Position numbers and translations under genes: made by a program | Part shown: positions 10,024 to 38,484 of the stretch, in pieces | Position numbering within the stretch: position 1 is the stretch's first letter | How the letters are laid out: each line of letters begins with the position of its first letter | Notes under the pieces: model-generated | Databases searched by the model: none | What the model was told of the DNA's origin: nothing | What the model saw: only the letters and a program-made list of their open reading frames with translations | Source: Phaeosaccion multiseriatum | Taxonomy: Eukaryota; Protista; Ochrophyta, other classes | Assembly: GCA_965112735.1 (NCBI GenBank) | Contig: OZ218957.1 | Location: 3,224,001-3,288,000 of the forward strand | Direction of reading: 5' to 3' | Length of the DNA stretch: 64,000 bases

Positions 10024-10664
10024 GGATGCCCAGTTAGGGTACGGAGCGAGTGAGGGAATGAGAGAGGGAGAGAGGCAGTCAGTACACTAGAGTGGGGAGG
10101 GTATTGTTCCACCCGCCCCGCCCGCCACGCCCGCCACGCCCGCCACCAGCGGAGGCTGACGTGGTCAAGCTTTTCAAGTTCAACTTCAACCCGTGCGAGA
10201 ATCGAGGCTCTATGAGCACAGTGATGGAATGAGGAAGGCGGGTGGGAAGGTAGGTCGCAAGAATGCAGAAGAAGAGCATGTCTGTGGGTAGCACTGGAGG
10301 AGGGGGGCAAGAGAACAAGTGACGGGGTCACCTCTTGCGTCGGGGGGGGTGCGATGGCGGAGCTTCCCTGGGGGAGAGGGGAGGAGGAGGTGTGCAGAGG
10401 AGGAATACTATAGAGGCAGAGGGAGAGAGAAAGAGAGAGAGAGAGAGAACAATAGCATGGAAGAGAACTCTCTTGTAATATATAAAACATTATATAACAT
10501 TACGACACATCCATGTTATCGTATTGTACGCCTGCTGTGTCAGTGCTTCTTAACGATTCACTTTCTTGATCTGATGATGCGCACCTTGCTAGCTCCTCCG
10601 TCCCGGCCTTGTGTCTTCCCTTTGTGGAGAGGAGAGGCAGTGGTCTTGTGTCTGGCCCCTTGTG

Positions 10665-10762
10665 GACAGGCAGAAGAGGATGGACTGGTCAAGAGGACGG
10701 CGTCTCTTTTCTAAAAGTTTTCAGCCTCGAGTCCTCTGTCATTCGCCCCCCCTTCGCCTCTC
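10665..10762 (-). promoter_or_regulatory. Candidate SECIS element in the 3' UTR of the SelW gene
   Basis: Minus strand: helix [18 protein letters not shown] / CCATCCTCTTCTGCCTGTC; core AUGAC...UGAC (non-Watson-Crick quartet); helix II AGAGGAC/GTCCTCT plus GGC/GCC; apical AAAA with a CTTT/AAAG ministem. It lies about 200 nt after the stop codon. Confidence 0.7.
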
Positions 10763-10968
10763 TCAAGAGACCAAGTACGTCAACCATCAACAAGGTGCTC
10801 CCTCTCTCAAAGAGCCTTGAGTACATCAACCAATGTGCTGCTCCTGCAGCTGCCCTCCGACGCGTCATCTCCTCATCTCCTTTGCGGAGGCGTAACCCCC
10901 GTGCGCTCACTGCCCTCTCTTTTCTCCTCTCTTCTCTTCTTCTCTTTGGCTCGACTGTAGAGAGCAGC

Positions 10969-11824
10969 TTATGAGCTGCTCTGGAAGTCTCTAAGCTTGT
11001 CCACGAGTGCTTGCACGCTGCTGGCATCGGTGCACTTCCCCATGCCTTGTCTGTTGGAGTGCAGCAAGTCGCCGGTGTTGAGCAGAGTCACCTCGAAGTT
11101 CCCAGTGACACCCTGGGCAGAGAGGGAGAGAGAGAGGGGGGGGAGGGGAGGGAGGGAGGGAGAGAGGGGGGGGGGGGAAGGAGGGAGGGAGGGAGGGAGG
11201 GAGGGAAGGAGGAAGAGGGGGAGGGAGAGAGAGGGGGGGGGGAGGGGAGGGAGGGAGGGAGAGAGGGGGGGGGGGGGGGAAGGAGGGAGGGAGGGAGGGA
11301 GGGAGGGAAGGAGGAAGAGGGGGAGGGAGAGAGAGGGGGGGGGGGGGAGGAAGGGCGGGTGAAGGCAGGGTAAGGGAGGGCTCTAGAGGACAGGCTAAGA
11401 GCCTTGTTTTTGCCTGTTGTTCACTTACCGGGTCCTCCAGAGGAATTATTTCCAGTTCATCGGGGCCTTGGAAAAAGAGGGAGAGAGGAAGAGGGAGGGG
11501 AGGGGGGGGAGAGGAAGGAGGAAAGGGGGAGAGGGGGAGAAAGAGGGGGAGAAAAGGAGAGGGAGAGGCAATGGGAAGTGAGGGAGAGGGAGAGAAAGAG
11601 GGGAGAGGGAGAGGTAAGAGAGGGAGAGAGAAAGGTGGGGAAGAGAGGGGATCTAACAAGGGGATCTATATATCTAACAAAGAAACGAGATAGTGCAAGA
11701 GAGATGGAGAAAAAGATATCTCCTCACCGAACACGGCCTCGAGCTTCATTTTCAATGCGTTGAAGTAACGCACGTAGCCTCATCCTCCACAGTATTGTAC
11801 GTGCAGTCGAGCCAATTGAGTCAT
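10969..11824 (-). CDS. SELENOW: Selenoprotein W (Rdx / SelT-SelW-SelH family), 92 aa, Sec encoded by an in-frame TGA at 11782-11780
   Basis: Exons 11824-11728, 11466-11429 and 11112-10969, with canonical GT-AG sites, give MTQLARLHVQYCGG(U)GYVRYFNALKMKLEAVFGPDELEIIPLEDPGVTGNFEVTLLNTGDLLHSNRQGMGKCTDASSVQALVDKLRDFQSSS*. This contains the YCxxUGY and GNFEV...LLHS signatures. Confidence 0.92.
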
Positions 11825-11984
11825 GTTAAAGGGAACAAGGAAAGAATGATCGATCCAAACGACATGTAGTTGGAGTTTCCGTTTCAGCGTTGAAAGGAAA
11901 CTCAAACTTCTACCCCTTCACATCCAGCCAAGCCCGGCTAAAATTTATAGACGAGCGAGTGGGCAACAGCGGGGTTCCAAAGCC

Positions 11985-37825: not shown

Positions 37826-38484
37826 TTTGATTCGATTTTGAAACGATACGGGGGATGAAGAAAGTATTTTTACTCGCTCAGGGGGCATGCATATAAGAGA
37901 GAGGTGGGAGAGACATGAAGCGGGGCAGTTACGACGCTCTTTTCTTTTGTATACGTAACGCAGTCACGTGACACTGCAAGAGGCAAAGGAGAAGGAGAGG
38001 AGGGGGCGGTGAGCTCCACTTGTCTCCACCCTGTCTCTCGGCCCTTGGGAGGGAGGGAGGGAGGAAGTGTATCACGCTTACTTACGGGCTCGTTTGTCAG
38101 TCTGTGAAAGTGGGTATTGAGTTGCTGAGGTGAAGGGCGTGGATGGAGAGGATTAAGAGAGAGGGCGGCTTGGTGGCGAGTGGGAGGGAGGGAGTGGGGA
38201 GAGAGGAAGCAGACGGGGTTGAGGGGGGGGGGCAAGGGGGAGAGGGGCGTCGGAATACACTAGAGAAGGGGAGGATCGAGAGCAGAGAGAACAAACGAAT
38301 GGGTAAGAGAGGGAGGGGAGGCTCTCTGCGACAGAGGGACGGAGGGATGACGGATGGGCCGGGCCGGCGGGTCAGGGTGGGGGAGCGGTGGGGGACCGGA
38401 AGGAAGCGATAAATGCTTCGTCAATGCAAACATGTTTTTATCATTCCCCGTCACAAGACTTCCTTCTGCCTCACACCTCATCGC

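Follow-up and report, generated by a model that had tools for sequence, protein, structure and literature searches.

We asked whether the minus strand of the window (the whole 64,000-nucleotide stretch of Phaeosaccion multiseriatum DNA that was analysed, to which all unprefixed positions refer) carries a selenoprotein W (SelW, SELENOW) gene in which an in-frame TGA stands for selenocysteine (Sec). The original prediction had proposed three phase-compatible exons encoding a complete 92-residue protein of the Rdx family, with TGA exactly at the redox position of a CxxU motif. Direct reading of the minus strand at 10969-11824 recovers this three-exon SelW gene base for base; the coordinates, the GT-AG borders and the phases all match the sequence, and TGA is read at codon 15. 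The parts of the gene, in the order of transcription, are listed below.

11943..11949, minus strand: possible TATA box (TATAAAT), 119 nt upstream of the ATG, suggested by the sequence alone
11824-11728, minus strand: exon 1, 97 nt, with the ATG at 11824-11822; predicted beta1 strand, C12-G-G-U15 and start of helix 1
11782-11780, minus strand: in-frame TGA, codon 15, predicted selenocysteine, within TGT GGA GGA TGA GGC TAC (11791-11774)
directly after exon 1, minus strand: donor GTGAGG
11467..11727, minus strand: intron 1, GT...AG, CT-rich and of low complexity
11466-11429, minus strand: exon 2, 38 nt, linker and predicted beta2 strand, ending in conserved L-E-D-P
borders of exon 2, minus strand: pyrimidine tract and AG before, GTAAGT after
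11113..11428, minus strand: intron 2, GT...AG, CT-rich and of low complexity, with 2.4 copies of a 102-nt unit
11112-10969, minus strand: exon 3, 144 nt including the TAA, preceded by CAG; G-V-T-G-N-F-E-V ... H-S ... C72

Joined together, the exons (97 + 38 + 144 nt) form one frame of 92 codons, and exon 3 is in phase 0 because exons 1 and 2 sum to 97+38 = 135 nt. Each exon is intact: apart from the TGA at codon 15 there is no internal stop, no frameshift occurs and the splice sites are canonical. The encoded protein is small, and its redox motif, C12-G-G-U15, specified by TGT GGA GGA TGA (11791-11780), begins at residue 12, directly after M-T-Q-L-A-R-L-H-V-Q-Y. From its sequence, the model appears to be a small single-domain protein that lacks a signal peptide, a membrane segment and additional domains. 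As had been anticipated, the ORF track misses the gene, because the mechanical ORF list breaks it into three pieces of 41, 35 and 40 aa. Immediately upstream lies an out-of-frame ORF of 14 codons (11821-11865, minus strand; ATG 11865-11863); it ends in a TGA (11823-11821) that shares bases with the start codon of SelW, as A-TGA. A paralogue search of the genome with exon 3 returned the gene itself alone, with no second SelW copy.

Homology was tested exon by exon, using either single exons or relatives aligned to the raw window DNA. Taken alone, exon 3 found no family in Pfam or NCBIfam scans and no candidate in a word-index protein search; phmmer against the PDB gave mouse selenoprotein W (2npb) no better than E 0.51, below the repeat-protein noise, and the first 30 residues of the exon gave nothing there. 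A genome scan with Pfam Rdx (PF10262) did not pick up the SelW locus. The shortness of exon 3 puts it beyond the reach of family models when it is used by itself, which justified an exhaustive phmmer search; against 1.8 billion representatives it returned 48 hits. Roughly 33 of these are short SelW-like proteins of 50-106 aa whose C-termini match the whole of exon 3 at 44-59% identity, and the others are long repeat proteins in which the match is limited to a helical stretch. Neither the phmmer nor the metagenome searches yielded a full-length exon-3 relative above 59% identity. Pfam Rdx was passed by eight of the ten short relatives scanned. We then compared a profile built from 14 short relatives and exon 3 (profile A1) with PDB chains; at E up to 1, its sole match is mouse selenoprotein W 2npb (E 3.7e-11, residues 13-85), which predicts a thioredoxin-like beta-alpha-beta-beta-beta-alpha fold for the algal protein.

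The N-terminal half of the model is reached from the DNA itself. In a six-frame genome scan with TIGR02174 (CXXU_selWTH), model positions 1-33 match the window at 11711-11806 with one TGA inside; this match at exon 1 scores 16.9 bits (genome-wide E 0.43), under the cut-off. A further Rdx-family locus, distinct from SelW, lies on the minus strand at G000:C3:1167227-1167325 (L009/L010) and matches TIGR02174 with 25.4 bits and PF10262 with 21.5 bits (model positions 37-70). Using six relatives as tblastn queries against the whole 64-kb window in six frames, we found that the best hits are the three SelW exons, in collinear order. Exon 3 is matched at E ~1e-11. P0040, P0015 and P0030 match exon 1, across the TGA, with E values from 5e-7 to 2e-4. 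Exon 2 falls collinearly between them with 64% identity to P0013 and P0016 over 11 residues (E 0.07-0.4, weak alone). The E values at exons 3 and 1 place the SelW match beyond chance, and the alignments as a set point to Rdx/SelW homology over the whole length of the gene.

These alignments also bear on where exon 1 ends. One alternative accepts a real Sec-encoding gene and joins exon 1 to exon 2 differently, through a later donor or in an isoform that uses the beginning of intron 1. When the frame is continued beyond the donor (11698-11727, minus strand), intron 1 gives F-G-E-E-I-S-F-S-P-S, which resembles the linker of the relatives, and the P0015 alignment crosses the exon 1 donor (28 residues, 61% identity). 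However, this read-through frame stops after 21 codons without supplying the conserved E-D-x-G ahead of T-G-N-F-E-V, and the sole downstream GT is a poor donor, whereas the modelled exon 2 provides L-E-D-P-G, preserves the frame and is bordered by a strong AG and a strong GT. We consider a different junction improbable. The linker-like start of intron 1 may be left over from an older exon, may belong to a rare isoform or may be due to chance. The linker of the relatives, F-G-D/N-D/E-I/L-S-F-I/V-P, is encoded by exon 2 too.

With the junction kept as modelled, the decoding of codon 15 can be read from the relatives. A pattern scan of metagenome contigs with a 9-row alignment recovered 30 loci encoding exon-3 relatives. 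At 24 of the 30, the upstream frame reads Q-Y/F-C-G-G/A-TGA-G-Y, in which the stop is always TGA and never a Cys codon, and the TGA of the window aligns with it. The same TGA aligns with the final W of the motif in P0030 (C-G-G-W) and in P0040; since TGA occupies that site in 24 of the 30 metagenomic loci, the W in both proteins is best explained as a TGA that the gene caller took for Trp. P0040, a metagenome protein of 89 aa, reads Q-Y-W-G-G-W-G-Y and probably represents a SelW of the U-x-x-U form, with Sec at two codons, which has been reported for Ostreococcus lucimarinus and amphioxus (PMC7539508). SelW was found in Ostreococcus in 2007 (PMC2375036), and SELENOW ranks with the most widespread selenoproteins of algae, with Sec in 80% of the algal members (PMC7539508). 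We conclude that the TGA at codon 15 is almost certainly read as selenocysteine.

The relatives also show what gene callers make of such a codon. Complete SelW relatives are 89-97 aa long and most phmmer matches are fragments of 50-70 aa; in the public calls, one 90% cluster holds 97-aa forms beside truncated forms of 65-71 aa, and only one relative carries the name 'predicted Rdx family selenoprotein'. The expectation that automated annotation would truncate genes of this kind is thus borne out among the relatives.

Reading TGA as Sec requires dedicated machinery, and the original prediction had held that this alga uses Sec and had proposed searching its genome for tRNA-Sec, eEFSec and SPS2. 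The search was run and all three were found, with SelD/SPS for SPS2. Ten tRNA-Sec matches exceed the Rfam cut-off, of which ARAGORN confirms nine, with anticodon TCA. SepSecS is matched by three exon pieces (203, 106 and 89 bits), SelD/SPS by two (85 and 83 bits) and eEFSec by its domain 4 (44 bits, above the cut-off), alongside a weak match to PSTK (21 bits). Judged by these matches, the Sec machinery is present in the genome, in agreement with a Sec-utilising alga. Nine of the tRNA-Sec genes stand in tandem at G000:C12:2660299-2661653 (L002-L008) with a period of mostly 170 nt, eight of them confirmed by ARAGORN, and the tenth lies on another contig (G000:C10:1901872-1901957, L001). The gene for tRNA-Sec is usually single-copy. 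A known exception is a diatom with up to eleven predictions (PMC5330540).

A SECIS element in the 3' UTR is the remaining requirement in cis. One candidate lies downstream of the stop codon, as follows.

10641..10786, minus strand: SECIS-like stem-loop in the 3' UTR, starting 227 nt after the stop; folds with z -2.0 and -2.25

From its base upward, the stem-loop consists of a long basal helix, an internal loop in which GAAUGAC faces UGAC, and helix II. The quartet is formed by AUGA (10742-10739) opposite GA (10690-10689). Helix II comprises 7 bp, a UCGA bulge and 3 bp, and leads into an internal loop with AAAA (10721-10718), above which sits a mini-stem of 5 bp with a 4-nt loop. The fold persists in a 201-nt context (z -2.25), and as modelled it sets the AUGA/GA quartet between helices I and II, in the sense orientation and downstream of the stop. 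We scanned both strands of the window with a descriptor that calls for ATGA, GA 30-110 nt further on, a helix II of at least 7 contiguous pairs and a helix I of at least 8. It finds one site in 128 kb of strand, the SelW element in the sense orientation, against a chance expectation of 0.1 to 1 sites per 128 kb from dinucleotide shuffles (0.1 in one estimate). In the SelW genes of the relatives, AUGAC...YGAC stem-loops lie 50-170 nt past the stops.

The geometry of the candidate departs from the textbook element. Classical SECIS criteria place unpaired AA/CC 10-13 nt after the quartet, allow helix II no run of more than two unpaired bases and describe the 3' core as KGAW (PMC2375036, PMC3753652). 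In the SelW element, AAAA lies 17 nt after AUGA instead of 10-13, the UCGA bulge leaves 4 nt unpaired where the limit is two (PMC2375036), and UGAC takes the place of KGAW in the 3' core (PMC3753652). The Rfam model SECIS_1 (RF00031) has no match at E up to 10, either at the locus or in the 67-Mb genome. Its silence at SelW is uninformative, because it is silent throughout a genome that has the Sec machinery and no fewer than four selenoprotein genes with TGA. An energy-based SECIS score gave no signal separable from the GC-rich background, and in comparisons among the elements MAFFT left the SECIS helices out of register and RNAalifold gave no consensus. Other SECIS candidates in the window were rejected: UUGA/CC at 10810 is absent from the minimum-free-energy fold (z -0.64), the structures formed by AUGA at 10868 and at 10876 are Y-shaped or weak, and ATGA at 38481 has z +0.36.

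Further TGA-containing genes of the same genome place this geometry in context. Three are listed here with the stem-loops that follow them.

L026 (G000:C2:2841960-2845052), motif at 1129-1158: SelM-like gene, E-T-C-S-G-TGA-Q-L-N-K-L-K, SECIS-like element at L026:2707-2761
L025 (G000:C8:2105046-2108201, near 2.106 Mb), motif at 1287, stop at 1710: Sep15/SelM-like gene, SECIS-like element at L025:1900-1945
L021/L019 (G000:C3:~4049234-4052699), minus strand, motif at L021:1758: GPx gene, N-V-A-S-K-TGA-G, SECIS-like element at L019:725-671(-)

The SelM-like gene has a signal-peptide-like start before its motif and a GTACGT donor after it. The Sep15/SelM-like gene, the second of the Sep15/SelM family, reads T-C-P-A-TGA-K-L-K-R-L-P-E-V-K-R-F-I, and N-V-A-S-K-TGA-G of the GPx gene is the classical Sec active site. 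Genome pattern hits and folds reveal a GAAUGAC/UGAC core common to the stem-loops after the SelW, SelM-like, Sep15/SelM-like and GPx genes; helix II differs in sequence from one element to the next, yet pairs in all of them. The Sep15/SelM-like stem-loop is of type I and very stable (z -5.1), and it opens with the same nine bases as the SelW element, GCGAAUGAC. Because three other genes with a catalytic TGA precede stem-loops with the same core, the deviations of the SelW element are offset. In two of these elements, Sep15/SelM-like and GPx, 14-16 nt separate the unpaired A's from the quartet, so the long spacing in SelW is possibly a habit of the lineage.

These shared features raise the possibility of a lineage-specific SECIS dialect, unseen by the Rfam model, with an invariant 5' GAAUGAC and 3' UGAC, a long or split helix II and A's 14-17 nt from the quartet, in use in the SelW, SelM-like, Sep15/SelM-like and GPx genes. 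We put this forward tentatively, as a proposal somewhat short of an even chance. If it holds, standard SECIS-based pipelines under-count the selenoproteome here, and the tenfold dosage of tRNA-Sec would fit a large selenoproteome. Pipelines that rely on Rfam SECIS_1 would miss the selenoproteome of this genome, and the GAAUGAC/UGAC core offers a practical handle for finding the remaining selenoproteins where that model fails.

The non-canonical SECIS geometry is what would speak for a second alternative, in which the locus is a pseudogene or decaying copy, its TGA is a true stop and no full-length protein is made. Against this, TGA is taken as the ancestral state in the relatives examined (24 of the 30 metagenomic loci, with no Cys codon), the exons are intact with canonical splice sites, the genome offers no second SelW copy as a replacement, and the SECIS-like core is the same as in other selenoprotein genes of the genome. 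We regard decay of the gene as very improbable. Chance similarity, or a wrongly assembled base at the TGA, has nothing specific in its favour beyond the fact that single-base errors do occur in assemblies, and is extremely improbable in the face of three collinear exon matches (E ~1e-11 for exon 3 and down to 5e-7 for exon 1) and of TGA at the same site in the relatives themselves.

The anatomy of the gene and its homology to SelW, the TGA that relatives carry at the corresponding codon, the machinery for Sec, and a SECIS-like element whose core recurs at other selenoprotein genes of the genome together argue for a functional nuclear SELENOW gene of the Rdx family, with a spliced mRNA for 92 residues in which UGA at codon 15 is read as Sec by means of a 3'-UTR SECIS. 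We hold this reading to be very likely. The primary transcript would be spliced at the two canonical GT-AG introns into the mRNA for 92 residues. Sec-tRNA(Sec) would then decode the UGA at codon 15, delivered by eEFSec that is recruited through the SECIS ~230 nt into the 3' UTR. The predicted product is a small cytosolic oxidoreductase with a thioredoxin fold, whose C12-x-x-U15 would cycle between the selenol/thiol and the selenenylsulfide.

This is a genuine SelW selenoprotein gene and an ordinary new member of a family already widespread in algae, not novel biology, and it leaves knowledge of SelW or of Sec decoding unchanged. Its immediate value is an annotation fix, in that without it a genuine redox gene would be overlooked or cut short; among the relatives, public gene calls routinely end SelW at the UGA or take that codon for Trp. 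In combination with the Sec machinery and the further genes that contain TGA, SelW identifies this alga as a committed user of selenium, and this bears on trace-element ecology. The more unusual points are the candidate SECIS dialect and the tRNA-Sec array.

Comparison with known systems sets the gene within the SelW branch. Like SelT, SelH, SelV and Rdx12, its product is predicted to have the thioredoxin-like Rdx domain with C-x-x-U (PF10262, TIGR02174). SelT has a membrane or ER segment, SelH a nuclear basic region and SelV a long N-terminus, so that all of them are longer or carry extra segments compared with SelW; mouse SELENOW has neither a signal peptide nor extra domains. Among PDB chains, profile A1 matches SelW alone, and none of the other Rdx selenoproteins, at E up to 1. 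The SECIS-like element, for its part, shares with the canonical SECIS (RF00031, SECISearch consensus) helix I, the AUGA/GA internal loop, helix II, unpaired A's and a mini-stem, in a type II layout.

The algal protein resembles mouse SELENOW (PDB 2NPB) in size (92 aa against a 96-aa chain), in a C-x-x-U near the N-terminus and in the G-x-F-E-V and H-S-K/N motifs. It differs in its low identity (exon 3 alone gives E 0.51 against 2npb) and in a longer linker. It differs also at C72 (11034-11036, minus strand), which in the algal clade stands in G-x-G-K-C; most algal SelW relatives retain a Cys in G-x-G-K/R-C, at the place where mouse SelW has Tyr. Going by this conservation, C72 may serve as a second redox or glutathione-binding residue.

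Identity to the metagenomic relatives (L033-L062) is 42-57% over exon 3, with 71% over 21 aligned residues in L062. The gene departs from the algal and metagenomic relatives in its two introns, where many relatives look intronless, and from the metagenomic ones in its SECIS, whose helix II is split and whose distance from the stop is 227 nt, compared with 50-170 nt in theirs. It shares with the metagenomic relatives the TGA at the same codon and an AUGAC-core SECIS shortly past the stop. With both these relatives and the algal and protist SELENOW proteins (Chlamydomonas SelW1/2 and Ostreococcus SelW; PMC7539508, PMC2375036), it has in common Q-Y-C-G-G-U-G-Y and T-G-N-F-E-V...H-S-K.
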